A stretch of 64,000 bases of DNA from Anthoceros angustus. Its lineage: Eukaryota > Plantae > Anthocerotophyta. Shown here piece after piece: positions 13,413 to 64,000 of the stretch. The notes below the pieces were generated by a model that searched no databases, was not told the origin of the DNA, and worked only from the letters and a program-made list of their open reading frames with translations. Location of the stretch: contig VJWM01000178.1 in assembly GCA_010909165.1 (NCBI GenBank), positions 410,656-474,655 of the forward strand, in the 5' to 3' direction. Positions within the stretch are counted from its first letter, which is position 1, and the number at the start of each line of letters is the position of its first letter. Both the position numbers and the translations under genes were made by a program.

Positions 13413-16400
13413 CTAAGCCCCACTCGTGTGGGTTTTGGAAAATTTGTCTCCCTCCAGATGTAGCAATTCCCCTCCTTGTTCCAGGTGAAAAACATCTCGC
13501 TGAGCCTTGCATGTAGCTACACCTCCAATCTCAAGATGCTTCGTATCCCCAACCAAAAACCCATGCACCAGTCCATCCAAATCTGTCCACCAGCTCTGGC
13601 CTGGCTGCTTCCAGGCCCCATAACCAATTCTCCTCACCTGCATCTCCTGCGCATGATCCCACATCTGGGCACCCGTGTATATGCTCGACATCAACACATA
13701 CGCTGCAGCGTCTTTCTTGTCGAGTTTCACTGCTTCATCAAAAGCATGGCATCCCACCTCCACATTGCCCCACTTTCGACAAGCATTCAACAGAGTGTGC
13801 CAAACTGCAGCATTAGCTTGGACAGGCATTGCCCTTATCAATGCTAGCGACTCGTTGAGTTGGCCTGCACGGCCCAAGAGATCCACCATGCAAGTGTAGT
13901 GCTCCACTGTAGGACTGATGCCATAATCTTTCCTCATGGCCTCAAAGTACTCCCGCCCTTTGTCCACTAGCCCTGCATGACTGCATACTGTGAGTACACT
14001 AAGGAATGTGATGCTGGAAGGCTGTATGTCATCCTCTCTCATTCTGCAGAACAGGTCAAAGACCACTTCACTGTCTCCTTGACGAGTGTAGCCTGCAATC
14101 AGTGCATTCCAGGTGACAACATCTTTTTCAGGCAATGCCTCGAACACATGTTGCGCATCAAACATACTCCCTGATTTCCCATACATGTTTATCAAACTGC
14201 GGGCTACAAGGACATCAGCTTGGAGCCCTTGTTCTTTGATCTGTGCATGAAGCTGCTTTCCCATATGCAAAGCTGCTCCGTTTCCACATGCCTGCAGGAG
14301 GCAAGTATATGTAAACGAATCAGGTGCAACGACGCCTTCATCTGCCATAGCACTGTAAAGGCACAGAGCTTCCTGCCCCATTCCCTGTTGGGAATATCCT
14401 GCTATAAGTGTTGTCCATGTCACCACATTTTTCTCACAGAGCCCATCAAAAACGCCCTGAGAATCCTCCAGACTGCCACACTTCGCGTACATGTTCACCA
14501 AACTGCTGGCTATAAACAAATCAGCTTGAAGCCCTCGTTCTTTAATTTGTGCATGAAGCTCCTTCCCTTTATCCAAAGCTGGGGGGCCAACACATGCACA
14601 TGCTTGAAGGAGGTACACAAATGTCAGCCCAACAGGTACTGCCAAGCCTTCTTCCTGCATTGTATTGTATCGACGGAGGGCTTCCTGACCCATGCCGTTT
14701 TGAGAATATCCTGCTATAAGAGCCGTCCACGTCACAATGTTTCTCTGACCAAGCCCGTCAAACACAGCCTGAGCATCTTCCATGCTGCCACACTTAGCAT
14801 ACATGTTAACCAAGCTTGACCCTAAAATCACATCAGCCTGAAGTCCTCGTTGTCTAATCTCTGCATGAAGCTGTTTCCCCTCTGCCAAAGCCCGGTTGCC
14901 TACACTTGCACATGCCTGCAGTAGAGAGACAAATGTTACACAATCCGGTACAGTAACGCCTTCTTCCTGCATAGCACTGTAAAGAAGAAGAGCTTCCTGA
15001 CCCATGCCTTGCTTTGAGTATCCTGCTAAAAGCGCTGTCCATGTCACCACATCTTTTTGAGTGAGTCCATCGAACACTCTCTGGGCGTCTCCAAGGCTGC
15101 CACACTTTGCATACATGTTCACCAAACAGTTGGCTATGAAGTCATCAACTTGATGTCCTTGTTCTCTAATTTGTGCATGAAGCTGCCTACCCTTGTCCAA
15201 AGCCGAGGTGCCGACACTTGCACATGCCTGCAGGAGGCACACAAAAGTTACAGAATCAGGTGCAGCCACACCACCTTCTTGCATCATGCTGTAAAGGCGC
15301 AGTGCATCATGACCCATGCCCCGCTGGGAATATCCTGCTATCAACGCGGTCCATGTCACGACATTCTTTTGACCGAGCCTGTCAAACACCACCTGAGCGT
15401 CGTCCAAGCTCCCACACTTGGCATACATGTTTACGAGGCTGCAGCCCAATAGGACTTCAGTCTCAAGTCCTTGTTCTCCAATCTGTGCATGAAGCTGTCT
15501 CCCCTTTTCCAAAGCTGGACCGCCCACACTTGCACATGCCTGCAGGAGAGATGCAAATGTCACAGCGTCGGGTACAGCAGTTCCTTCCTTCTGCATGGCA
15601 CTGTAAAGACAGAGCGCTTCCTGAGCCATGCCCTGCTGCAAATATCCTCCTAGCAAAGCTGTCCAGGTCACCACGTTCTTGTTACCAAGTCCGTCAAACA
15701 CTCTCTGAGCGTCTTCCAAGCTGCCACACTTTGCATACATGTTCACCAAGCTATTGGCCACAAACACATCAGCTTCATACCCTCCTTCACTAATTCTTGA
15801 GTGAAGCTGCTTACCAATTGCCAAACCTGGAGAGCCCACACTTGCACAAGCCTGGAGGAGGCACAAGAAGGTTACAGAAGTAGGTGAAGCAGTAACTTCT
15901 TCTTCCATAGCACTGTAAAGACGAAGCGCTTCCCAGCCCAACCCCTGCTGGGAATATCCTGCTATTATGGCATTCCAAGTCACTATATCCTTTCGACCAA
16001 GTCCGTCAAACACTTTCTGAGCATCCTCCAAGCTGTCACACTTTGCATACATGTCCACCAGGGCATTACAAACAAACAAACTATGGTCACTCCCAGAGGC
16101 CAACACATCGGCATGCACCTGCTGCCCAGTTTTTAAGTCTGCTCCCCTTGCACAAGCCTGAAGGGCTGCCACAAACACATGCCCATCTGGCTTCACACCT
16201 GACCTTCGCATCCGCTTATACAGCTGTATGGCCTGCTCAGGTTTTCCGTGGCGAACATTTGCAGAAATGACGGAAGACCACATGAAGGCATCTGGTTTGG
16301 CAGCCACGGTAAACACATCCATCATTTCAGCCAACAGGGCATGGGCAGCATACATTCGCATGATGTGGTTGCACAAAAAAGTATCCGACTCATACCCCTT

Positions 16401-16691
16401 CATCACCACCAAAGCATGGACACGGCGACCCACAACCGGATCCCTCTGAGTTTCACACCTTTTTATGACAGCACGAAAAAGAGATTGAGCAATACAACAG
16501 TCTATCTGCACCAGAACTCCCAGAGCCTCCGCAGCTTCATTGAGCTGCCCCTGCTGACATAGATGGCTCACAGTTTCAGCCGTCACGTCCCACTGATATC
16601 CTGCAGCGCTGAATTTGAGGTCCGCCATCCCACCAACTTTCCTTGGCCGCCACAGTTGTCGCCCACTCCGTAGCTGAAGTGCAATACCCAT
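13413..16691 (-). CDS. Intronless PLS-class PPR protein, about 8 PLS triplets plus E1/E2 and a WW-type PG box, without a DYW domain
   Basis: The 1122-aa ORF starts at TTG 16781, with the first ATG at 16691. It has repeated VTWTALIAGYSQQG / TFVCLLQACA / LVNMYAKCGS units, then YTCMVDLLGRAG and KQPGQSWWTDLDG. Confidence 0.95.
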   Translation of the reverse strand: MGIALQLRSGRQLWRPRKVGGMADLKFSAAGYQWDVTAETVSHLCQQGQLNEAAEALGVLVQIDCCIAQSLFRAVIKRCETQRDPVVGRRVHALVVMKGYESDTFLCNHIMRMYAAHALLAEMMDVFTVAAKPDAFMWSSVISANVRHGKPEQAIQLYKRMRRSGVKPDGHVFVAALQACARGADLKTGQQVHADVLASGSDHSLFVCNALVDMYAKCDSLEDAQKVFDGLGRKDIVTWNAIIAGYSQQGLGWEALRLYSAMEEEVTASPTSVTFLCLLQACASVGSPGLAIGKQLHSRISEGGYEADVFVANSLVNMYAKCGSLEDAQRVFDGLGNKNVVTWTALLGGYLQQGMAQEALCLYSAMQKEGTAVPDAVTFASLLQACASVGGPALEKGRQLHAQIGEQGLETEVLLGCSLVNMYAKCGSLDDAQVVFDRLGQKNVVTWTALIAGYSQRGMGHDALRLYSMMQEGGVAAPDSVTFVCLLQACASVGTSALDKGRQLHAQIREQGHQVDDFIANCLVNMYAKCGSLGDAQRVFDGLTQKDVVTWTALLAGYSKQGMGQEALLLYSAMQEEGVTVPDCVTFVSLLQACASVGNRALAEGKQLHAEIRQRGLQADVILGSSLVNMYAKCGSMEDAQAVFDGLGQRNIVTWTALIAGYSQNGMGQEALRRYNTMQEEGLAVPVGLTFVYLLQACACVGPPALDKGKELHAQIKERGLQADLFIASSLVNMYAKCGSLEDSQGVFDGLCEKNVVTWTTLIAGYSQQGMGQEALCLYSAMADEGVVAPDSFTYTCLLQACGNGAALHMGKQLHAQIKEQGLQADVLVARSLINMYGKSGSMFDAQHVFEALPEKDVVTWNALIAGYTRQGDSEVVFDLFCRMREDDIQPSSITFLSVLTVCSHAGLVDKGREYFEAMRKDYGISPTVEHYTCMVDLLGRAGQLNESLALIRAMPVQANAAVWHTLLNACRKWGNVEVGCHAFDEAVKLDKKDAAAYVLMSSIYTGAQMWDHAQEMQVRRIGYGAWKQPGQSWWTDLDGLVHGFLVGDTKHLEIGGVATCKAQRDVFHLEQGGELLHLEGDKFSKTHTSGA

Positions 16692-16811
16692 GATTTCCAC
16701 AGGCACAGCCAACACCTGTGACGACGTGATTGAACCCGACGGAACCCAGCTTTTGGCGGCCGGCTGGACTAGCTGAGCCAATTACAGTGTCCATGTCCAG
16801 ATACGCTACCA

Positions 16812-46383: not shown

Positions 46384-46628
46384 ATAGCCTTTCAGTTTAC
46401 TCGAGTTAGCTCGTTACATGAACGGCTATTAGGTAGTTTAGTATTTCCAGCTAGACTGACAGTTATTAAACCGCTCTCTCTACAAGCATGTATAAGTATC
46501 CTTCTGCTTCATTAATACACTACTCGCTCTTTTCTTGGTACACACGTGAGCTCGTGTCCTTCCGTCTCTCTCTCGCGCGTTTGGCTCTGGCCACCGCCAT
46601 GATCCAACAAGCAATCCTAATTGCTTTA
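46384..46628 (+). repeat. Copia 5' LTR (conserved core)
   Basis: Matches 54526-54767 and is followed directly by the PBS. Confidence 0.9.
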
Positions 46629-46641
46629 TGGTATCAGAGCC
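46629..46641 (+). other. Primer binding site (tRNA-iMet)
   Basis: TGGTATCAGAGCC. Confidence 0.92.
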
Positions 46642-49600
46642 ATCTTTGGGCGTGCGTGATGGATGTCAATGCTCCTAATGCATCCTAATCTAGGCGCCCT
46701 GGAGTCACGATGCCAAGACGAGGAAATTCACCTCCTTTTCCGAGATCCTTCAGCAAACCAGTGAAGCGTCCTACCTTTGTGTGTTCGGAGCATCAAGTGG
46801 TTTGCCTCGATTGCAGATCTTCGGAGAGAAGGGAGGCAGCGCCAACTGGAAGGAATCGCGATTGCCGCCAGCATTTTTCTGTGGTCACACCTGCACTCAC
46901 TCGTGTGACGCAGAGCGCACATTTTCCTCGGACATCCACATCTCCAAGACGCACTTTTGAGGGCGAGACAGTTGACCAGGACGAACTTTCAGCCTTACGG
47001 GAGCACAACACATCACAGTGGATTCTCATCGAAAAGCTCACAGACGGCATTCACAATCTCAATCAGTTGTGTGGAGAGCTTTCGAAGTTGGAGCCTACAC
47101 CTATGCCTGCCAACTCTTCTCGGAGACGTCCACAAGTGCAACGCACCATGCTGTGAGCATATCTTCTGTTTATGTCGGAAAGCTCAAACTCAGATGATGA
47201 ATTTGTTGACGACATTTCATCCCTCTTTGCTGATCCTTCCACATATTCTCCCCAGAGAACTTACGACAGATAGATAGACAGCGTCAACTTCAGTTGGTCT
47301 TGAATAGTCTTCTAAGGCCTGTTGCTCCTGTCAACATGGCCACAAATCCTGCTCCTTTGAAGATAGAATTCAAGGACAAGGATAGGTTCAATGGCACAGA
47401 TTATAATATCTGGGTCATGAGGCTAACTCAAATATTTGAGGAGCATGAGCTGATGTCAGTCGTGGACGGCACAGACCCCAAGGTCACAATACCTGCTAGA
47501 AGTGCAGACGAGATCCTAGCTTGGGAGCGGAAGGATCGTCGTGCTCGCTCTATTCTCATTGCTGCCTTAGATAAAACCATGATGCCTCATACAATAGGAG
47601 CCAAGACTTCCACAGCAGTTTGGGAAGTCTTCCAGTCTATCTATCGGGACAAGAGTTCAGCCTCCCTTGTGCATGCGCACAGAGACTTTTTCAACCTAAG
47701 GATGCGAGACAATGAGCCTGTTGAGGCCTACATCAACAAGTTTCGCACATCACGGGCTAATCTTGCCTTTTGTGGCACTGTGCTGTCAGAAGTTCAAGCA
47801 GCCATTAGCCTCCTGGCTTCACTCCCAGAAAGTTATCAGTATTTTGTGGCCATCCAGAATGCCACAATCAACTCTGCGGTGCAAGTGACAGCTTCTGGTC
47901 AAACACCCAAGGTAACGCTTGAGGATGTTATTGGAGCCCTTATTTCGAGGAGCGACTGAGCTTCGAAGCAAAAGGGTTCTACTTCGAATACCGTACTATT
48001 CACCTCAAGAGGACGGAGGCTTTCGTGGTAGGCGGAGGACGTGGCTCACACACCACCACGCACGATTGGCAACAACAACAACAAGACGTTTGTTTGCAAT
48101 TGGTGCAAAATTCGGCACTATGAGCAGGACGTATAGAAGAAGGGAGGAGAACCTCGGCGTGATCATCCTCCGAAAGCAACGTCACCATCGAGGCTAAGCA
48201 GCCCACTATCCTAGCGATGCACTGTCATCTACACAAGTGCACCACGATACTTGGTTTTAGATTCGAGCAACTAGTCACATTTGCTTTCATAGGCGTGCTG
48301 TCTTTTACTCCATTATTCCAAGCGGTTGTGTTGCTAGGGGATGATAGTGGGCTTTCGATCAAGGGTTCGGGATCAGTTGTCATCACTTTACCTGATTCTT
48401 CCAACCTCACTCTTACAGACGTGCTTTATGTCCCATCTATGACTAAGAATCTCATGTCTGTCTTGAAACTCTCACAGGAACATAGTTGCAAAGTGTGTTT
48501 CGATCATCAAGGGTGCTCCATCACCAGTACCAGGTCAGGTCTAGATCTCTTTTCAAGGTCTCCTTTCCATGATCTGTACCTTTTGAATGTCAAGAGCTTT
48601 TGGTTTACATACCGACATGCCACGTAAATTCTCGCTACATGCCTATGGCACGCTGCTAGGGCATGTCAACTCCCTGGGTACTCTAGTGAAAGGTGAGAGT
48701 TACCGAGAGCCTTTGGATTTTCCTTTTGACAAACATGCCTTTTGTGAGGCTTGTCAACTCAGTAAAGCCCACTCACTCCCTTTCTCGGATAAGGCTCCTA
48801 GCCGTGCTGATGGGTTGCTCCACACAGTTCATAGTGACATCTGCGGCCCTATGTCCACTAGCTCGTTTGGAGGGGCAGATTATTTTCTCACATTCATCGA
48901 CGAGTGGAGTCGGTATTGTGTGGTGTATCTGCTTCGGCACAAGAGTGAAGCACTTGACTATTTTCAGTCCTACGTTCAGTTTGCACAAAGACAGACTTCA
49001 AGCAAGGTGCGCATCCTACGAACAGATAACGGGGGTGAGTACACGAGCCATGCATTTGCTGCTTTCTGCGAGAAGGAAGGTATTCTTCATCACCAGCCCA
49101 TATACTAGAGCGTAATGCTTTTCGAGCGCAAAAGAACTTTGCAAGAAGCCACTTTGGCTTCTCTCATCTTTGGACTCACCGTGGGTATTCAAGCTTTGGT
49201 GGCGACCAACTATGTTCGAATCGCCCACCAAGGAACTTGGTTCCATTACTCCCTATGAGCGATGGACTGTAGAAGCCTCGAGTTGACATCTGCGCATCTT
49301 TGGGTCACCAGCTTATGCCCTTGTTCCACCAGCCTTGCGCTCCAAGCTTGATCCCAAGGCATCCCGTCATGTTTTCGTCGGCTATTCTGAAGAGGTGAAG
49401 GGCTACAAACTTTTCAACCCTTTCACTCGGCACCTCACTTTGTCACGGAGTGTGATTTTTCATGAGGCTGCCTTACTTCGCCGACATGCTGCTTTGCACC
49501 CGGATGCCACTCCTCTGCCTGCTTCCATCATTGATATTGAGGATTCTCCTACTGATGAAACTAACGAGCCGAGTTTCTTTGATGATGAGGATGACTCTTC

Positions 49601-50458
49601 TTCGGATCAAGGGGGGACAGCTCTAGCAGCACAGGCTCCTCCAGCTTCTGATGACAACAATGACCCTGAGGATATCACACCTCCACCCTCTCCAAGCCAT
49701 AATGATGAAAATCCACGTACACCTGTTAATGGTGATGCTGATCTGGTTGAGCCTGTAGATGCCCAGGTCGAGGAGTCTGATCCTGAAGAAGAGACCCCTC
49801 CTCTTCGTCGTTCTGCCCGCATACGTCGCCCCATGCATGAGTGGCAAGATCCTCAATACCGGTGGGCAAGCATGGTAACCTCTGACTTGTCTACTGCAGT
49901 TGTACTTAGTGTGTCTTCCTCTTTAGGTGAACCACTACTTACAAAGAAGCCTTAGAAGGCCCTGAGGCCTCTTTTTGGCAAGCTGCTATGGACTCAGAAT
50001 ACAATTCTCTCATTCAGAACAAAACTTGGAAGCTTGTAGATCTCCCTCCAGGTAGAAAACCAGTTGCATGCAAGTGGGTCTTTAAGAAAAAATTGAATAC
50101 TGATGGAACTGTTGGTAGAAACAAGGCCCGCCTTGTTGCCAAGGGCTACAGCCAGATTCCTGGACTCGACTTCAACGAAACCTTTGCCCCACGTCAAGTC
50201 CACCTCTGTAAGGATCCTGTTAGCCCTAGCTGTCCATTATAACCTTCTTGTACACCAACTGGATGTCAAAACAGCCTTTCTGAATGGCCTTCTGGAGGAA
50301 GATATCTACATGAGCCAGCCGGAGGGTTTTGTCATTGACAAGGACAAAGTGTGCAAGCTGCTCAAGACACTTTATGGTCTCAAACAGGCATCTCGTGCAT
50401 GGTATGAGGTATTCCATAAGCTTTTGATGGAACTAGGCTTCAACGGCATTTCCAGGAT

Positions 50459-53005
50459 ACGTATTTGATACCGGAAGCCCACAAGGGAGGGATCATTCCG
50501 GCAGTTCAGTTCTCCAAGAATCAGATCCCGGAGGAGGTTATGAGCATGTTCCTACGACCAAAGGAGGAAGTATGGTCGCAAGGCAATGGCTGGAGGATCT
50601 CTTTGTTCAAGGATTCTCGCCCATGGCTATGGACAATCTTGCGATTGCACACAGAGACCGCTTGAGATATGCTCACACGCTGGGGCTCATGGAAGCCCAA
50701 GGCCGTGGAAATTCGCAGTGAGATTATGTGTACCTACAACACGACTGCCAAGCACATTAGATGTCAAGACCGGTTGATTCTCGGTGGTAAATGTGGGTGA
50801 GCAAGGAGTAGTGGAACTCAAGGACGGATGGCGAAGATGCAAGGAGCATATGAAACATTTAGCTCCATGTCACTTGCCAAATCTTGATGCAAGAATTGTT
50901 CCTCAAACGTGGTACCACGGATTTGCCTGTGAGGCATGCGGGCACACGGATGAAGAGCTTATGCTCTTATGTGACAGTAACAGAGGCTATCATATTTTCT
51001 CGCACACTTAAAGGATATTCCAGAAGGGAATTGCATGTGAACACCGTGATTCAACAAGTTTGCATGCGCCCATGGCTCTATCTACCGAGAGTAATGAAGA
51101 AGAAGTACGCTGCACCGAACAGAGTTGAGAGTAACACTCAAGACAACTCGTGTTGGAATGGGTACAAGAGGACGAGAGCAAATGACAGCGGTTGCAAAAG
51201 AGGAAAGTTCGCATGAGCGATCTTGCCAATCGAATTCCTTGTTGCCAAGGCCAAGCGCCAACAAGGCACATGAGGGTGCCGCTATTCTTGAAGAGTGCCT
51301 TCAGAATCACTCACCGCTTGCGCAGCTTGCTCCTCCGAGGAATTTAGTGACACCAAGGCCAGAAGTGGAATTTATTCGCCAAGATATGGCCGACTAACGG
51401 CAAGGAAGACGACTGGAAATTCCCATTTAATGATGATGTATGAGATGTCTCGTGGAAGTTGGTGGATTGGGCCACCATTCTCAGATGAACAAAGTGCGCA
51501 CCGAAACCACTTGGTGATGGAGGGAGCAAGAATCGCTTTGTCTCTACCTTCCTCGTACACCTATATCGGAGGAGGAGGTTCTTACACCGACGATTGGAAG
51601 AAGCCAAGATAGAAGCTACTCCGGTGAGGTAGCGGAAGGAGAGCCACCGCCCCGAGGATGAAGAGACGGATGAGGCCCCGGGCAAGAGACCGCCACGCCT
51701 GAACCAACATGAGGCCTCGTGGATCGTGAACCAACAAGAGAAAGGGAAGAAGGCTATAGAAGCACCTCCTACGGAGGAAGGAGGAAAGGATACGAGACCA
51801 CCTACCGAGGGTTGAGGATTGAATACAACACCGTGGTAGGAGTGAACCCCACCAGAGGGACCTGTGGAGGACGGAGGACCTACAGGAGCTTTACCTCCCA
51901 CCAAGAAGTAGTAACAAGACTTGAGGCGGTGTGACGAGAAGAACGAGGAACGCTTGGTGACCCACGCACCAAGGAGGAGCAGAGGGAAGTGTTCGAGAAT
52001 GCCGGCATCCCATGAGGTAGTTGCCGAGTGAAGGAAGTGGGCGCAGGATCTATGGACGCCCTAGTGGACCGTGTCGGAGGTGACCAAGTTCGTCCGAACT
52101 TCGAGACCTACGAAGGAGCCGGAGGATGCCGAGAAGAAATTGAGAGGAGCTCGAAACCACCTCCGAGAAGCAACACTGCGCTAGATCCGCCAAAGAGCGA
52201 CAGGATGACCACCAAGTTGGTGAATGTGGGAAATGATTGACCAGGTCTTAGGACAGGAGGCAAAATCAGCCAAGAGGGCTGAGGAGTTGGAAGCTGCCAG
52301 GAAGGAGGCAGAAGGAAAGTTGGAAGCTACCCTAGCAAGGGTAGGACACATCGAACGCAGCAAGGAGGAGGCAGCATCTACAGCTAGCAAGGCCCGGCGG
52401 GACCTTGAAGACGAGAAGGACCTCCTACGAAAGAAGTTAGTTGCCATGGAGCAACGGAAGGAGCATTACAAGGGAAAATACGACAGCTTGGTGAAGGAAC
52501 GACAAGGATGGGACAATGTGACTAAGGGTCACAAAGAGGAGCTCAGACACGAGAGAACTTTTGGAGCGAAGAAGAAGGACGACCTACCCACGCCTTATGA
52601 AACGGAGGCAAGGAACCGCCGGAAGGAGGTTTTGATGGATCTTTGGAGGGTCTTCAAAGTCATTCGAGGGAGGCGAGCGATCACGCTATAGTGAAACGAG
52701 CGATGGAAGCCATGGAGAAAGATAAGGAGATTGGGAGGCTTGCCCCGGAGTTGGAGAGAGCGGTAGTGGAGAAAGAGGCCGCATTGGTAGGAGTGATCTC
52801 AAGCCGTGGGACGAAGCGTCATCCCACTAAGGGTCCGCATCATGGACGACAAAAGAAGGAGAGTGGTAGGGTGGCGACCTACACAACAACCTCCCGAAGC
52901 GATTGAGGAACGCCAGTGAGGAAGACGGCAGACCTCAGCTCGACGCCAAGTGGAATAGTGCACCACGGAGGTCAAACTTTGAGTTGGTACAAGGGAAGCC
53001 AGGAT
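50459..53005 (+). mobile_element. 2.5-kb insert inside the Copia RT, containing the PHD-Gypsy 3' region and a coiled-coil ORF relic
   Basis: CCAGGAT is present at both junctions (50452-50458 and 52999-53005). Segment ~50610-51362 aligns to ~60465-61216. Confidence 0.85.
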
Positions 53006-54525
53006 GCGGACACAAGTGTTTATATCCTGTGGGATGGGGCGGATTTCTTGATCCTCACTGTCTATGTTGACGACAACTTTCTATTCAGCAACTCTGCTGC
53101 CCTTATGGCCGTATCAAGCTGATTCTTCTTTCTAAGTTCGATATGACTGACCTAGGAGAACTCACCTTTTCCCTGGGTGTTCAGTTTCATTTCAACAGGA
53201 CTGATGGCACCATTGATATACATCAAGAGCACTTTGTGCATCAGCTTCTGCAGCGCTTCAACATGGAAGATGCGAAGCCTGTAGCTACACCCATGTCTTT
53301 AGGTGAGAAGCTCTCCTTAGAACAGTGCCCTGCTACTAAGGAGGACAAACGAGCCATGGCCAATATTCCTTACAGACAGGCTGTCGGCTCCCTCATTTAT
53401 CTCTCCAGCTGGACCCGTATGGACATTACCCGGGCAGTGGGAGCTGTAAGCCAGTTCTTGGAGAATCCTGGCCCATCTCATTGGACTGTTGTTAAACGGA
53501 TTTTTAGATATTTAAAAGGGACACCTAGGACGGGGCTGAGGTTTTCTAGGTGTAAGGCAGGTCTGGATCTCACAGCTTATTGCGATGCCGATTGGGCGGG
53601 GGATCCCGACACCAGGAAATCTACGCTCGCACCTTTCTGGTACCTCAGCTTCATGGAATGTCAGCAAGTCGGAGAGGAGGAGTCTTGTGTCCACTGATGA
53701 CAACATTGCTGACCTTCTCACGAAGGCTCTTCCTAAACCTGTTCATGAGAAGCACACTGCCTCTGCTGGAATTAGTGAAATTCCAGCTGTAGCTGTTAAG
53801 GGTACTGCCCATTAGAGTTTGCTGCTTCTAATTCTCCAGTGGGAGTTTGCCTTGTTTTGTGAGTGTTTTCTTCAGGTCTTCCCTTGCCTTGTCGATTTTT
53901 GCGATTCTTCACCGTATGCACACCTGAATGTCAGCATCACAACTCTGTCAAGTTTCATGCATGCTAGCACCTGTATCCCACTTCCTGTCACGTGTGGTGC
54001 AGGTTTCTCCTTTCCTTTCTTAGGAGTCTTAGTGTCTTCCACATCTTCAGTCCCCGTTGCTGTCTCCTTCACACTCTTGGAACCCGTAGAAGGTGTGGGA
54101 TGCAAAGCCACACCTGTCACTCCCTTCCTGCTCTTGCTTTTAGTGTCCTTGCAGCTCATCTTGTGGAACTCTGCCGAGGGAGCTGCAAACACCTTCCGAG
54201 GAGAGCCCTTGTTGTCGAAGTTCTAGAGCCGGCGAACTGTCTTGGGCTTGGAACTGTCCTTCGGAAGTGGAGCCGAGCTAGGAGAGTAAAAGAACACGAT
54301 GTTCGAAGTTGGACAGTGCAACGCGTGAAGGCATGATTGGCGCTCCGAAAATTTCAGCACTGGAATCCAAATCCTGAGGAGCTGAGGACTGAAGTGAGCT
54401 AGAACGTGATCTCGTTTTGCATGTGTTTCGAGGCAATTATTCTCAACCTGCTACGGGCTTATGCGAAGGAAGGACATTTAGCTTCTGCCACGCTGAAAAT
54501 CGCAACTAAGTGGAGTATTGGGAAT

Positions 54526-54767
54526 ATAGCCTTCGATTTACTCGAGGCTCGCCACATGAACGGGCTATTAGGTAGTTTAGTATTTCCAGCCAGACGCGCT
54601 TATTAAACCGCTCTCTCTACAAGCATGTATAAGTATCCTTCTGCTTCATCAATACACTACTCGCTCTTTTCGTGGTACACACGTGAGCTCGTGTCCTTCC
54701 GTCTCTCTCTCGCGCGTTTGGCTCTGGCCACCGCCCATGATCCAACAAGCAATCCTAATTGCTTTTA
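54526..54767 (+). repeat. Copia 3' LTR (conserved core)
   Basis: Matches 46384-46628. Confidence 0.9.
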
Positions 54768-57164
54768 GGCTCCACCAGATAAGCTGAATGACTTCTGATG
54801 GATAGGAATTCTACCATCGATTTCACGCAGCTTCGTTGTAGTCCGAATCTGACCATTACTGAATTGGCTAGGCTCACTAGGCAGTCCGCATATGTGGGAG
54901 CGCTCGATAGAAACCAGACACTGCTGTTTTCTTAGCTAGTTGGGGTTGGGAGGATTGCCGTTGACAACATTCCTCGATTGTCAAGCATAGGCGGTTCGGT
55001 ATTTTGAGGTCAGTGGAGAGGGACACACTCCGTCATCGCTAGAAAGGGACAAGATCACGGATCACCTTTCAAAAGGGCGCTGACCAAGACAGACAACACG
55101 CCCATCACGAGATCTCAGTTTGGAGACTGGAGCAAAGAGCCGATTCAAATGGAGCTGGAGAGTACGCCCAGCAAGAATGATGTTTTCACCGGAAAACATG
55201 GGAGTATGTCATTGGCGGATTTTGAAGAGAAGTTCCGCTGGGGAATGGCAGAAAACAAGATGAAGTACAAGGATCGTTCACCCAGAATGGCACTCATGAA
55301 GATGTCGAATATCTCGCGGTGAGGCGTTGATGTACTGAGACGAAGAAGGACATCTTGGCATCGGCGGAGAAGTGAGGCTTGCGGAGGAGTTGCGGCAAGC
55401 CACTCACTCCGTCAAGGAAGACGAGCTAGAGCATTTGGTTGATCTCATGTTTGAAAGATTGAAGGACATGTTTCCAACATCGTCCTTGGAGAAGATTCAG
55501 AGTGACGTTTTAGCTTCAAGTCCAATGAGGGCTCATACATCGGTCAAGATCTTGGTGGAGGACACGGATGTGAAGACCATGCGGAGGCTGCTGAAATTTT
55601 CATGGCTGCGATGCCACAGACGAAGGAAGGTAATGGATGCTCTTCATGGTGCTCATGGAGAAAAGTATGGGACGCCTACAAGATTGCGGAGAAGGTGCTA
55701 AAAGGGGATGCTGTCAGTCAAGCATACCTGGAGGATCACAATTTGATCAGAAGCAGCACTTCTTACGGCTCTGGACAAGGAGGATCCAGATTCCAGCATA
55801 AGGGCCGGTGTGAAGCGATTTGGGTCAAATCAAACCCAGTCACGAAGGAGAGACCCGGCCGTCAGGGCCATCAAATGTGGCAGGTGCCGTGGTGCACATA
55901 AGTCATTTGAATGTGACTTCAGACCTAGAGGCCCGAAGGGCAAGGAGGTTTGCAAGGCTTGTGGTCGATGGGGCCACATAGAAGCCGCATGTTGGGAGGC
56001 TCATCCAGAGCTCAAGCCCAAGGTAATGGGCGTGAAAAGGAGAAGGGCAAAGGCCCTAGTCGCAAGGCTCTTCTTGCGCAAGTTGAAGAGATGCGAGATG
56101 GCTAACATGGCGGCGGTAGTCACGCATTCTTTCTCGACTCGGATGAAGAAGTGTATGGCATGGCGATTCGCAAGAAAAGAAGAAGACCGCACTTGACCTC
56201 GGAGAAGGGTTCGCCAAGGACACGTCGAACGAGCAAAGCAAAATGCCCGAAAGTTTTAGGCAAGTGATGATGGTACTTGCGGTGGCTTCTAACCGAGGTG
56301 GATGTAGAAGCACGTTGGAGAAGGCCATGGAGGTTCCTGGTCAATTTCGGAACTTGGACTCAAGAGTTCACATTTCAAGAAGATCATGAGGGAATGGATC
56401 AGAAAGAGATAGAACCGAGAAGTCCTTCGCTTGATGTGCTGCGAGGAGACCATCTAAAGCCGAACGTCGGTAAAGGAGGTGTTGCCATGATTGACAACCG
56501 GAAATTACCTTTGACGGTTTGCACGATCAATGTCTTTGGTGGACACCGGAGCGATCCAAGATTGTTGGGAGCTCGTGTGCGCTCAGCTATGGCGCAAGCT
56601 GGTACCAAGCGATGTAAGCATCACTACTTCGAACGAAGGAAATGGTGATGGGATGACCAGAAACCGATCAAGATCGAGTTGAAGCCGAGCCAGAGGATGC
56701 AACCACAATGGAGGAGGTTGGTGACTGTGCCACGTCCTACGATGTGTTGTTAGGGGCGGATGCTACACATGGCCCGCCATGGGAGTTGATCCATATGAAG
56801 AAGCCTTCTATCGACCGTGGAAGCAAGGGATTTCGCGGTGCAACTATTCCCGAACATGAGCAAAAGTGGCGGAAGGAGCGAAGGCGTGAGCCCAAGCGCG
56901 CGAGATGGTCGAAGGCGGATGGCTTCCTGCTCAAATTGAGCAGGCGGAGGGGAGGAGGAGGAATTGTCCTCTCGGGAAGCACCAAAACCCGGCGGAAGGA
57001 GTGCTGATCGCGCTCGAGCACCTTGAGGAGGCAAGGGTTCGAGAAAATCACGAAAGGAGAATCGCCTGGAATCTCCGACACATGTCCGAGAGATCCATAC
57101 CAAACATGAAGCCCAGACGGAGGGAAGGCGAATCAATGATTCGTATGCGATGGAGCAAGTTCAA

Positions 57165-58030
57165 GGAATTCACTTGTTGGAATTGTGCTCGTGAATCGGA
57201 TTGAGGCGGTGCTTCAATGTGGCATCAAGGTTTGCGCTACACATGTGGAAAAGGACGAGAAGGCTAGAGTCGTGGCGGTAATTCTCGGGTTGTGCAATTA
57301 TTTCCATCTCTGTAAGAGAAGACGCAGTGAGAGGTTGTCGAGCAGCTGCCCACGGATCAAGCTTGTGGGAAGGAAGCAACAAGCTCCTCGTCGATGGATA
57401 TGATCATCGCAGATGGGAGTGTAAGACCTTCTCGCGAAAGAGGAAAGGCGAAGGTGTTTCCCTTCGCGGTCGCGTGGTTGTCGAGGAGGTTCAACTTGTG
57501 AATCCCGGATCTTTGGTACATCGAAAACGTGTGTGGAGCGTTGGACAAACGTCGTAACGATGTATGAGGAGGTCCGATCATGGTTCGGCAATGAGCTGGT
57601 CATTGATGCTGTGTGGCTCTTACGCGCACAGGATTCGCAGTTATTGGACCAATGTTGCAGGACTTGAGACACTGAGGCAACACAGAACACTCATGGTTCC
57701 ATCACGGAAGACCGTTAGTGAAATCCTGGAACCAGAAAGGTACTCGCAGCAAGTCAAGAAGATGGACAAACTTCCGTTTTATCCAGTGAACAGAGTTGGT
57801 GAAGCCAGGAGGGCATGGCCGACTTTGGTAAGTACGCCACAATCCTACGCATTCAGGCGAGGAGGAGATGGCATGATCCTAGACTCAAGGGAGGAGCTAG
57901 GAGAGCTCAATGTTGAGGAACGGACAAGCCATGGGTTTGCCAAGAAGGGTACACGAGACCATGGGTGTGAGTGAGGCGTCAAACACAAGTTCGGGACAGC
58001 ATTCGATCTATGACTTAAGGTGGTTAGTGA
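57165..58030 (+). pseudogene. C5 DNA cytosine methyltransferase domain within Gypsy pol (frameshifted)
   Basis: Motifs are in canonical order: I HLLELCS*IG then EAVLQCGIKV..HVEKDEKAR; IV DMIIA(G)WECKTFS; VI YIENV; VIII IDA..GSYAHRIRSYWTN; IX EER..AMG; X G(Q/T)AFDL. Confidence 0.85.
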
Positions 58031-60773
58031 GTCGGATTGGCATTTCGGTTGGCGAGGTGAAGGAAAAGAGCCACTTGCTAGCGAGATGGAAAGCCGGCAG
58101 AGGCGGATGAAAGGGAAGGAACCCAAGACACGTTCGGCATGGCTGCTGTGGAAACAGAGTTTGTAACCAAGAGTGTCACCAAGGAGGTTCACGTCTGGAA
58201 GATTGATGAAGATGTCAGTCCAGAAGACAAGCAAAAGATCATCGACATGCTCGAGAAAAACAAAGGTGCTTTTGCATTCAGTTGGAATGAGCTAGGGAGG
58301 TATGAAAAGATCAAGTTCAAGATTGTTACCACCAGCTCTGAGCCTATCTTCAGGAGAAGGCATAGGTTGAGTCCAGCAGAGTGGGAGATTGTGGACAAGC
58401 GTTGTCAGGAGCTGTTTGAGGCAGGATTGATTCGTAAATCAAGCTCGAGTATGTCAGCAACTCCTCCAAAGAAGGACGAAAATGGCGAGTGGAAAGATAG
58501 GCGAATGTGGGGACTATCGACCTCTCAACGAGTAACGTTGATGGAGCGGTATCCCATGCCTACTCCGGATGAGATTTTTGATGCAATTGGTAAGGCAAAG
58601 TACTTACCACTTTGGATTTCCTCGTTTCAATCGATTGTGATTGAGGAGCAAGACAAGAGCAAAACGGCTGGGAAAGGATCAGCTTTGGGAATGGGAGACT
58701 ATGCCCTGAAAAATGCTTCCATATATTTCCGGAGAATTGCGACTTGGAGTGCAGGATCCGCCGTTTGCGTTGTTACACATCCTAGTTTTCAGCGACACCA
58801 TCGAGGAACACATGGATCATCCGAGACTCTGCAAAGATTGTCCAAATCAGCTTGAAAGCTCATCCGAAAAGTGCAAATTTGCATTCGGATTGAGTATCTT
58901 GGACATGAAATTGTGCAGGAGGAATCATGCCGATTGGCTAAGGTGCAGGTGTGATGCGATGCCTAGGCCCAAGGATGTGGCAGCCTTAGAGCATTTCGGT
59001 TGGTGAACTACTACGGAGGTTTATGAAAGACCTCACACATGCAAACCCTTGTATGAGATGTCAAGAAGGAGGTAACTTGGAAATGGGATCAAGAACGAGC
59101 TAGCCGGCAAGATCTAAGGGATCAATGGTGAGAAGCCCATCTTGTAGACAGACTTTGAGAAGCCGCTTTGTTCATACGGATTGAGCAGGATAGGAGCGAT
59201 GTCACATCGATGCGAAGGAATGGAGCGAGTTGTGGCTTATGCAAGCGATCCAACAATTCAGAGGTAAACTACTCCTCATATGAAGGAGAGTGTCTTGCTG
59301 CAGTGTGGGCAATGTTGCATTTAATTTGGAAGGCGTTTCCAGTTGGTGACGGATCATCAACCACTTCATTGGCTCATGACCAACATGAAGTTGAGCGGGA
59401 AACTGGCCAGGTGGGCATTGCTGCTGTCCGAATATGACATGGAGATCGTGCATAGGCGCAAGGTGCACCACAATGCATGGTTTGAGTAGGAATCCATGCA
59501 AATCGGCGATGCCGGGCACGACAGATTTGGGACACATGGAAAATGTGCCCAGGCTTTCATGGCACTCATGGCGATCGAAGGTGAAGCAGGAGGAGAGCCG
59601 GATCTTAGTCATCGGGGACATGAGGCATTCACAAGCGTTGCGGCTCAAAGAAGGCAGTACCTAATGTCGTGCGAAACAAGCCCAGAGTGGCGGATACTCA
59701 TGGCGGATGGAGATGCTGAAGGAGAGGTTGTAAAGAAGGTGCCAAGTCCAAGAAAGAAAGGATTGTGATTAAAGTGCATGAAACACTAGGTCACTTTGGT
59801 GTAAAAGGACACACCACATGCTGAAGACCACATATTTCGGTCCCATGTATGCGAGATGTGGAAAGAGTGGTGGCTAGCGCGTGTGATGCAGTGAAGGCTA
59901 GATTTAACACACAAGATGTTGTGTTACACTCTTTACCAATCCGGGTTTGTTTCTTTGGTCGGTGGACTTGATGCCGGAACTACCATTGACAAAGCAAGGA
60001 AATCGTCCGATGGTGATGATTGAGCACTTCTCCAAGTGGGTGGAGGTAGCATTTTCGCCTCAAAGAACCTCATATTACACCAGAGCCTTTGGTGTGTACT
60101 AAATTGGAAGTGCGGGTGCTCACCGATCAAGGCAATGAATTGAGGAGAATTCGGCGTTCGGATGTGTTTGATTGATCACGGAGAACGTCCAGGATCATCC
60201 TCAAGGTGATGGTTTGGCGGAGAGGTTGGTTCGACATTCAAGGACGCCTCAAATCTTGCATCACCATGGAACCCAAGTCGGATGAATTACTTCCTATATT
60301 GTGTTGGGTTATAGAGTGAGTGTAGCATTGGGAAGCTTTCCTTACTTTACATTGTTCGGAAGGAATGCGCTTTGCCCAATGTGGTGCAGACAAATATTCT
60401 ACTCAGAGATTGGAGTAGGAATATGGAGGTGCTTACGGCAAGTGCAAGCTAGAGCGTAAATGTTCAAGGATTCGCCCATGGCTATGGACAATCTTGCGAT
60501 TGCACCGCAGACCAGCTTGAGATATGCTCACACAGGGGCTCATGGAAGCCCAAGGCCGAGTTCGCACAGAGATTATGTGTACCTACAACAGACGGCACAT
60601 TAGATGTCGACCTAGGTTGATTCTCGGTGGTGGTAAATGTGGGAGAGCAAGGAGTAGTGGAACTCGAAGGACGGGATGGCAGAAGGTTCAAGAAACATTT
60701 AGCTCCATGTCACTTGCCAAATCTTGATGCAAGAATTGTTCCCCAAACGTGGGTACCACCAGCGGACTTGCCC

Positions 60774-60908
60774 TGTGAGGCATGCGGGCACACCACGGAT
60801 GAAGAGCTTATGCTCTTATGTGACAGGTGCAACAGAGGCTATCATATTTTCTGTCTCACACCTGCATTAAAGGATATTCCAGAAGGGAATTGGCTGTGTG
60901 AACACTGT
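60774..60908 (+). other. PHD finger at the C-terminus of the Gypsy integrase
   Basis: CEACGHTTDEELMLLCDRCNRGYHIFCLTPALKDIPEGNWLCEHC has all C4HC3 ligands and lies in an intact frame (60627-60992). Confidence 0.95.
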
Positions 60909-61705
60909 GATTCAACAAGTTTGCATGCAGCCATGGCTCTATCTACCGAGAGTAATGAAGAAGAAATCGTTGACACGAGCGAGTTGGAGTAACACTCCAG
61001 CAACTCGTGTTGGAATGGGTACAAGAGGACGAGAGCGAGAAATGGCAGTTGCAAAGAGGAAAGTTCGTGCGGGCGATCTTGACAAAATTCCTTGTTGCCA
61101 AGGCTAGAAGCGCCAACAAGGCTCATGAGGGTCGCTATTCTTGAAGAGTGCCTCGGGAATCACTCACCCTTTCGTGATTGTCCTTCCTCCGAGGAATTTA
61201 GTGACACCAAGGCCAGTGTGGAAGAGAGCACGGCAAATTGTCTTGCCAGCTGGAGGAGTCTTCCTCAGCTGGGGGGCTCGACAATCACAGAGCAAGTGCT
61301 CGCTTTCTTACAGACTGTGTGCAAAGTTGGTTCAAGTTGGATGGATCGAGTTACGAACCATATGCGGAAGGCAGACCACACAAGCCCTAGCACCAATTAG
61401 CGAAGAAGGTGCAGTGGTGTTGGGTCTGAAGCACCCAAGCGCAAGAGAGGGAGGCCACAGCAGCGGCGGTGAGAGGAGATGGAGGCTCACCAACGCGAGC
61501 GTGGGCGGCGAGAAGCACGAAGCGAGAGATGCCTCAACCCGGGCGTGCAGCACCCACGGCTCGTGATGCAACGCCACAACGTGAGAAGCGGTGCTGCTAG
61601 GACAAGGGGCTCGGGAGGCGAGGGCGGTTTGCTCTCTGAGACACACAAGCGGCATGAGCGACGCAGCCGTCGTCGAGTTGCCGTCTTGAGTAGTGCCACC
61701 AAGGT

Positions 61706-63894: not shown

Positions 63895-64000
63895 CATAGC
63901 TGAAAACACTTGCTGCATACTTGTGATTGACCCACCATCGGGAAAAATTGAAACAATTTGATGCAAGTGACGGTCGATTGACTGGATGAGCAATGGGCGC

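Follow-up and report, generated by a model that had tools for sequence, protein, structure and literature searches.

A 64,000-nucleotide stretch of the Anthoceros angustus genome (contig VJWM01000178.1, forward-strand positions 410,656 to 474,655; hereafter, the window) contains the decayed remains of a Ty3/Gypsy retroelement, whose domains all lie on the plus strand in the order gag, protease (PR), DNMT3-like DNA methyltransferase (DNMT), reverse transcriptase (RT), RNase H (RH), integrase (IN), and PHD finger. The last of these is encoded by a 121-codon open reading frame (ORF) at 60627–60992, which represents the C-terminal tip of the Ty3/Gypsy integrase and contains a full C4HC3 PHD finger, CEACGHTTDEELMLLCDRCNRGYHIFCLTPALKDIPEGNWLCEHC. 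The initial annotation, made from the sequence alone, had proposed that this finger takes the place of the chromodomain of chromoviral Gypsy elements, reads histone H3 tails unmethylated at Lys-4 (H3K4me0), and is paired with a DNA methyltransferase. Here we describe the PHD finger as part of the integrase in a family of Gypsy elements of green algae and bryophytes, where it nearly always accompanies a DNMT3-like domain and is predicted to read the unmodified H3 tail.

Pfam PF00628 aligned over its entire length (model positions 1–47 of 47) with residues 50–94 of the ORF (E = 3.7e-12; 46.5 bits, cutoff 24). The eight zinc ligands (C50, C53, C65, C68, H73, C76, C91, and C94) were all present in canonical C4HC3 spacing and, together with the Pfam score, bear out the claim that the finger is complete. 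The 49 residues ahead of it correspond to the last SH3-like (GPY/F-type) strands of the integrase and a conserved APCHLP linker. An AlphaFold2 (AF2) model of the module, built with an alignment of 74 relatives, had a mean predicted local distance difference test (pLDDT) score of 81.7, with three strands at its N-terminus and a PHD fold predicted with confidence (pLDDT 88–96 across residues 41–90), and Foldseek matched it to many PHD structures with a probability of 1.00 and a root-mean-square deviation (rmsd) of ca. 1 Å. Mapping by tblastn placed the SH3-like/PHD span (60630–60965) behind the zinc-binding domain and the core and C-terminal region of IN (Table 1), in agreement with the position after the integrase that had been read from the sequence. 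In the segment that joins the SH3-like strands to the PHD finger (residues 24–31; window 60696–60719), the family has an invariant Cys28 and a near-invariant His29, both within APCHLP, in addition to His24, and chlorophyte members add Cys17 and Cys25 to this set (alignment A1). Cys28, His29, and His24 may form an extra zinc site ahead of the PHD finger.

When the 121-residue ORF was used as a query for an exhaustive HMMER search, the best 150 clusters (each represented by one sequence at 50% identity) included ca. 80 that matched the whole SH3-like and PHD module in one stretch. The long matches were polyproteins containing RVT_1, RNase H, DNA_methylase, Integrase_H2C2, rve, and a C-terminal PHD, two of them from Haematococcus lacustris. 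A metagenome scan returned no relative with the single ORF as the query and 542 matching stretches when the closest modules, aligned (A2), served as the query. One bryophyte-type locus (L008:918-2225) has an uninterrupted 436-residue ORF that joins H2C2, rve, and PHD and stops one codon past the module. With this ORF as the query, the same fusion was found in the liverwort Calypogeia fissa (P0301; 80% identity), in three proteins of Klebsormidium nitens (including P0324), and in Sphagnum magellanicum; a Closterium integrase matched without the PHD module. In relatives, a complete integrase and the PHD finger thus share one frame, and from uninterrupted ORFs the finger is translated as an integral part of the integrase.

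To the integrase-only query, from which the PHD finger was left out, 116 of the 120 best matches contained PF00628, including proteins of Chlamydomonas reinhardtii, Volvox, Pleodorina, Tetrabaena, Chromochloris, and Monoraphidium. None of these 120 matches contained Chromo, and the chromodomain PF00385 was absent from the window ORF and from all 240 listed relatives. The proposal that the PHD finger stands in place of a chromodomain is therefore right as to position, the finger being at the same C-terminal end of the integrase and in frame in uninterrupted relatives, but no relative found by integrase similarity has a chromodomain. In a maximum likelihood tree of the 100-residue module, the window sequence paired only with P0004 (an SRA contig) and the deep branches were unresolved; we therefore claim no donor and no order of events. 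With 45 residues, moreover, the PHD finger offers too little sequence for a host donor to be named. The family differs in what follows the module: chlorophyte-type polyproteins (P0018, P0043, P0051, and P0135) continue for 100–465 unannotated residues beyond the PHD finger, bryophyte-type ORFs such as that of L008 end 1–5 codons past the module, and the window copy ends 27 residues past the last Cys.

Among 84 long chlorophyte polyproteins collected by integrase similarity, 79 had the order RT-DNMT-IN-PHD; DNMT was undetected in four, and one was without the PHD finger. Of 80 fetched loci, approximately 35, of the bryophyte type, showed PR-DNMT-RT-RH-IN-PHD, the same order as in the window. 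The DNMT segment thus lies between PR and RT in the window, L020, L023, L029, L034, and ca. 30 other loci, and between RH and IN in chlorophyte polyproteins (P0013, P0051, and P0105). Among solved structures, the DNMT segments of both layouts matched only DNMT3A/B/C, and weakly (E = 5e-6 to 5e-7). The co-occurrence of a PHD finger and a DNA methyltransferase in one element, as the initial annotation had it, holds for the window, through its DNMT remnant, and for the family, through the 79 polyproteins. These results indicate that the PHD finger is nearly always inherited with a DNMT3-like domain in green algae and bryophytes.

Several features of the DNMT region itself were also observed. In chlorophyte Gypsy polyproteins, including P0221 (Chlamydomonas CHLRE_09g398141v5), P0240 (Pleodorina), P0294 (Monoraphidium), P0262 (Chromochloris), and P0045 and P0177 (Haematococcus), the DNMT3-like stretch was mostly missed by PF00145 or scored near its cutoff; the literature searched describes Gypsy-DNMT3 elements for streptophytes only. 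A G-patch domain (PF01585) was found in some chlorophyte members (P0051, residues 1184–1223; L066:5771-11485, residues 911–954), where it separates the DNMT-like region from the integrase. At most bryophyte-type loci (L020, L023, L029, and others), the DNMT match was split into residues 1–231 and 228–399, ca. 245 nt apart, and L002:6132-7334 has a continuous DNMT ORF of 400 residues. The split and continuous forms may reflect an insertion or deletion polymorphism within the methyltransferase.

In 74 module sequences with a mean identity of 45%, all eight zinc ligands were 96–100% conserved, and Met62-Leu-Leu, Asp66, Gly71, Leu77, Pro79, Leu81, Pro85, Gly87, and Trp89 were also conserved. The initial annotation had suggested estimating dN/dS across copies. 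When this was run as the ratio of nonsynonymous to synonymous polymorphism (pN/pS) pooled over 79 distinct bryophyte-type copies, values of 0.32–0.45 were obtained for the PHD finger and 0.50–0.83 for the integrase core, although these loci had been picked by PHD-module patterns, which biases the PHD estimate downward. In each divergence bin, the integrase core had the higher value of the two, also when the codons used as search patterns were left out. The PHD finger is therefore kept under purifying selection at the level of the family.

The window copy itself is an ordinary dead member of this Gypsy-DNMT3-PHD family within a transposon nest. Its domains were mapped by tblastn with the polyproteins of 14 intact relatives, to which the ORF module is 44–52% identical; Pfam was silent on most of the decayed pieces and gave no score to those of gag and PR. 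The succession of RT, RH, and IN is that of Gypsy elements. At least 15 in-frame stops and five frame changes interrupt the copy from DNMT to the integrase, and it cannot perform any of the functions proposed below. A TGA at 60618–60620 and a frame change part the PHD ORF from the integrase, and the ORF has an in-frame deletion of three codons after His24; these codons are retained by all relatives, the second window copy among them. The statement that the PHD stretch stays in frame despite surrounding indels is correct as a description. As a signal it fails, given the TGA, the frame change, and the deletion: local defects number at least 20 over ca. 3.3 kb, and because an open stretch of 366 nt would be left by chance in ca. 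1 of 10 cases at this density, its openness is uninformative on selection. We rejected the open frame as a sign of selection on this ground and because the PHD of the second copy is broken. No long terminal repeats (LTRs) or other repeat pair flanking the main copy were found inside the window, which ends at 64000, and a search of sequencing runs with 59700–61100 listed none.

Table 1 Features of the Gypsy-DNMT3-PHD family in the window.
Feature	Position	Strand	Evidence
gag CCHC zinc knuckles (55810–56196) and protease DTGA motif (ca. 56515–56679)	55810–56679	+	Read from translations; P0171 matches 55921–56019
DNMT3-like cytosine methyltransferase remnant, upstream of RT	57288–58007	+	tblastn to DNMT segments of P0064, P0105, and P0013, E to 6e-20
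Reverse transcriptase remnant	58169–58921	+	tblastn
RNase H remnant	59171–59477	+	PF17917, E = 3.2e-9; tblastn
Integrase H2C2 zinc-binding domain, decayed, one stop	59720–59968	+	tblastn; stop count
Integrase core (rve) and C-terminal region, decayed, five in-frame stops, frame differs from PHD	59944–60594	+	tblastn; weak Pfam rve match
Integrase end: SH3-like (GPY/F-type) strands, APCHLP linker, PHD, 27-residue acidic tail, stop	60627–60992	+	ORF; Pfam; tblastn; AF2
PHD finger proper (C4HC3), ORF residues 50–94	60774–60908	+	PF00628; PDB sequence matches; Foldseek
Second partial copy, family 3′ end (integrase C-terminus, broken PHD, 230 nt beyond), inside a Copia element	50604–51370	+	Sequence identity

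The second partial copy is 85% identical to 60461–61223; its PHD is frameshifted and has lost zinc-ligand Cys residues. The location in a nest of transposable elements (TEs), as initially described, is correct for the window and rests on these two family copies. The Copia element (46384–54765) is bounded by LTRs at 46384–46627 and 54526–54765, which are 92.7% identical, and includes gag (47234–47956), IN (ca. 48587–49105), and RT, which runs to ca. 50470 and continues from ca. 52916. It is split by an insert of ca. 2.4 kb, the start of which is the 3′ fragment of the Gypsy-DNMT3-PHD family. Elsewhere in the window, a single ORF of 1122 residues on the minus strand (13413–16781) consists of repeated PPR-like motifs; repeated PPR motifs are typical of organelle RNA-editing factors of land plants.

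As to what the PHD finger reads, its best sequence matches in the PDB were CHD4, the ATXR5 PHD (57.6 bits), MLL3, DPF2, WSTF, KDM5A/B PHD1, and ORC1b, and further BAZ2A/B, BHC80, UHRF1/2, and AIRE; the top matches include structures of BAZ2A/B in complex with unmodified H3K4. Foldseek superposed the model on the PHD fingers of DPF3b, BAZ2A, and UHRF1 with an rmsd of 0.7–1.4 Å (0.7–2 Å including the ATXR5–H3 complex), and complexes of the UHRF1 PHD with PAF15 and Stella were among the structural matches. No dedicated reader of trimethylated H3K4 (H3K4me3; ING, BPTF, or TAF3) was recognised in the best 60 sequence and 50 structural matches. In the ATXR5–H3 complex, the amino group of A1 is held by the carbonyls of Pro60 and Gly62 and R2 by Asp41 and Asp44, and ATXR5 requires K4 to be unmethylated in order to recognise H3 (PMC5499861). 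The residues aligned to Pro60, Gly62, Asp41, and Asp44 are Pro85 (96% conserved), Gly87 (89%), Asp66 (96%), and Asn69, respectively. At position −2 from the zinc His, where H3K4me3 readers have the cage Trp, there is Gly71 in the window copy and Gly in 96% of the 74 relatives, and the residue before the first Cys is Pro/Ala49; the initial annotation was correct in noting no aromatic cage. The acidic DEE that it described ahead of MLLCD is also present, as an acidic patch ahead of strand β-1 with the family consensus DDE. Both the sequence and the predicted fold thus place the finger in the class that binds unmethylated H3 tails. Because the closest solved domains read unmodified H3 and the residues that hold A1 and R2 are conserved, there is good homology-level support for predicting that the PHD finger is a reader of the unmodified H3 tail.

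On this basis, the PHD finger would bind the free H3 N-terminus when K4 (and R2) is unmethylated, as do its closest solved relatives, and would thereby tether the integration complex to nucleosomes whose H3K4 is unmethylated. Such tethering would direct new copies away from active promoters and toward silent or intergenic chromatin, which is the task of the chromodomain in chromoviruses, and the DNMT3-like enzyme of the element would then work in an H3K4me0 context, as host DNMT3 enzymes do. We regard it as moderately probable that the PHD finger tethers integration to H3K4-unmethylated nucleosomes and biases insertion away from active promoters. An active Chlamydomonas Gypsy element with a PHD finger, Gypsy-7a_cRei, has 2.6 times the expected number of intergenic insertions (Craig et al. 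2022, 10.1101/2022.06.16.496473); 86 laboratory insertions of it are available.

Several points weigh against tethering by H3K4me0 recognition. The specificity of PHD fingers is unreliable when read from sequence, and fingers of the CHD4/UHRF1 class are responsive to H3K9me3 as well, or to the N-termini of proteins other than histones. The loop-1 residues of ATXR5 that contact K4 act through their backbone, and their sequence is not conserved here. Gypsy-7a_cRei, the source of the intergenic precedent, may lie outside the clade of the window element, and one bryophyte-type copy (L002) lies within ca. 4 kb of host RRM genes. Besides the downward bias in pN/pS noted above, all sampled bryophyte-type copies are decayed, with no ORF of at least 600 amino acids.

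The PHD finger could alternatively read the H3 tail and, instead of choosing the integration site, guide or license the DNMT3-like enzyme of the element or help to silence or conceal the new copy, in an ADD-like split function of the kind raised by the initial annotation. The pairing in 79 of the 84 chlorophyte polyproteins and at all mapped bryophyte-type loci is in favor of this, as is the chlorophyte layout, in which DNMT is directly N-terminal of IN-PHD and a DNMT-IN-PHD polypeptide is conceivable; in ATXR5, moreover, such a PHD finger bars a silencing enzyme from H3K4me3 loci (PMC5499861). However, RT and RH separate DNMT from the PHD finger in the bryophyte layout, which is also that of the window, the PHD finger is always on the integrase and never on DNMT, and four long polyproteins have IN-PHD with DNMT undetected. 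We therefore consider a guiding role unlikely, though it is the foremost competitor of tethering. Also rather unlikely is a broader reading, in which the H3K4me0-type PHD finger and the DNMT3-like domain would be inherited together as one chromatin module, built in two orders, of a Viridiplantae-wide Gypsy clade that spans chlorophytes and bryophytes; the element would read the lack of H3K4 methylation, integrate there, and methylate its own DNA.

A ligand other than H3, such as a host protein with a free H3-like N-terminus (PAF15 is bound in this way by the UHRF1 PHD), a part of the polyprotein, or nucleic acid, or a mainly structural role as a zinc module, would fit the PAF15 and Stella complexes among the structural matches and the additional invariant Cys28/His29 motif ahead of the finger. 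We judge it improbable, since few positions of the family are as conserved as those that hold A1 and R2 in ATXR5 and nearly all of the best matches are readers of the H3 N-terminal tail. Recognition of a methylated mark, either H3K4me3 or, as a true substitute for the chromodomain, H3K9me3, would agree with the position shared with chromodomains. CHD4 PHD2, one of the top matches, tolerates or prefers H3K9me3 in combination with unmethylated K4. The Gly in place of the cage Trp, the non-aromatic residue that precedes the first Cys, and the failure to recognise ING, BPTF, or TAF3 among the matches given above make such recognition very unlikely. Lastly, a chance frame, a host exon, or an unrelated nested insertion, suggested by the stop and frame change that part the ORF from the integrase in the window copy, is refuted by the occurrence of the same module after the integrase in hundreds of relatives and by a second copy of the same integrase-PHD junction within the window.

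Both components are known from separate publications: Gypsy-DNMT3 elements on the one hand, and PHD fingers within Gypsy polyproteins on the other. Fusions of TEs with PHD fingers have been reported generally by surveys. The Chlamydomonas retrotransposon REM1, reportedly described by Perez-Alegre and co-workers in 2005, is also said to carry a PHD finger. In the literature searched, it is not stated that an H3K4me0-class PHD finger is a constant integrase appendage of a DNMT3-Gypsy clade that extends from chlorophytes to bryophytes. If tethering to H3K4-unmethylated nucleosomes is true, the clade would represent a second, independent solution to the problem that chromoviruses solve with chromodomains, and a mobile element would bring along the means of both reading and writing the silent state, with implications for the ways in which TEs shape and exploit host methylomes. 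The near-obligate pairing of DNMT3 and PHD yields a concrete prediction that is testable in Chlamydomonas or a liverwort.

The closest described elements are those of K. nitens (KnitGypsy-Dnmt3; de Mendoza et al. 2018, PMC5890265). They share with the window family a Ty3/Gypsy pol with an intronless DNMT3-like domain, and a DIRS-like repeat layout is described for them; a PHD finger is not mentioned in the text and supplements searched (PMC5890265). The IN-PHD proteins of K. nitens are 49–53% identical to the bryophyte-type module, and the scaffolds with their genes end inside the elements, before any DNMT. Like the window family, Gypsy-7a_cRei has a PHD finger in a green-algal Gypsy Gag-Pol, proposed to limit harmful insertions, but the figure legend puts the PHD before INT and no methyltransferase is reported (10.1101/2022.06.16.496473). 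C. reinhardtii CHLRE_09g398141v5, in turn, has the RT-DNMT-like-IN-PHD order of the family. Chromoviruses, the chromodomain-bearing Ty3/Gypsy elements reportedly treated by Gao et al. 2008, likewise have a histone reader with a presumed tethering role fused after the SH3-like module of the integrase. In them, the reader is a chromodomain that recognises H3K9 methylation, whereas here it is a PHD finger with the unmodified H3 N-terminus as its predicted ligand.

Among host proteins, the H3K4me0 readers (ATXR5/6, BHC80/PHF21A, AIRE PHD1, BAZ2A/B, KDM5A/B PHD1, DPF2/3 PHD2, and UHRF1) are the best matches in sequence or fold, and the family PHD finger has in common with them the Asp after the third Cys, the P-x-G loop, the acidic patch before β-1, and the lack of an aromatic cage. 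It differs from them in that it sits on a retroelement integrase and its binding is predicted. DNMT3A, DNMT3B, and DNMT3L resemble the family in that a reader of the H3 tail with unmethylated K4 travels with a DNMT3-type catalytic domain. The ADD domain of these proteins is a composite of a GATA-like and a PHD finger, lies beside the catalytic domain in the same polypeptide, and relieves autoinhibition. Here, by contrast, a simple PHD finger is on the integrase, and RT-RH or IN lies between it and DNMT. Drawn from the co-occurrence of the two domains, the analogy with ADD and DNMT3 is a reasonable hypothesis, and the combination might be a functional convergence on the way in which host DNMT3 enzymes couple ADD to a catalytic domain, possibly as a single polypeptide in the chlorophyte DNMT-IN-PHD order. 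EpiLTRs also join a DNA methyltransferase and a chromatin reader in one LTR element; they differ in combining a DNMT4-like enzyme and an adenine methylase (DAM) with a chromodomain, where the present family combines a DNMT3-like enzyme with a PHD finger (10.64898/2026.05.21.726589).

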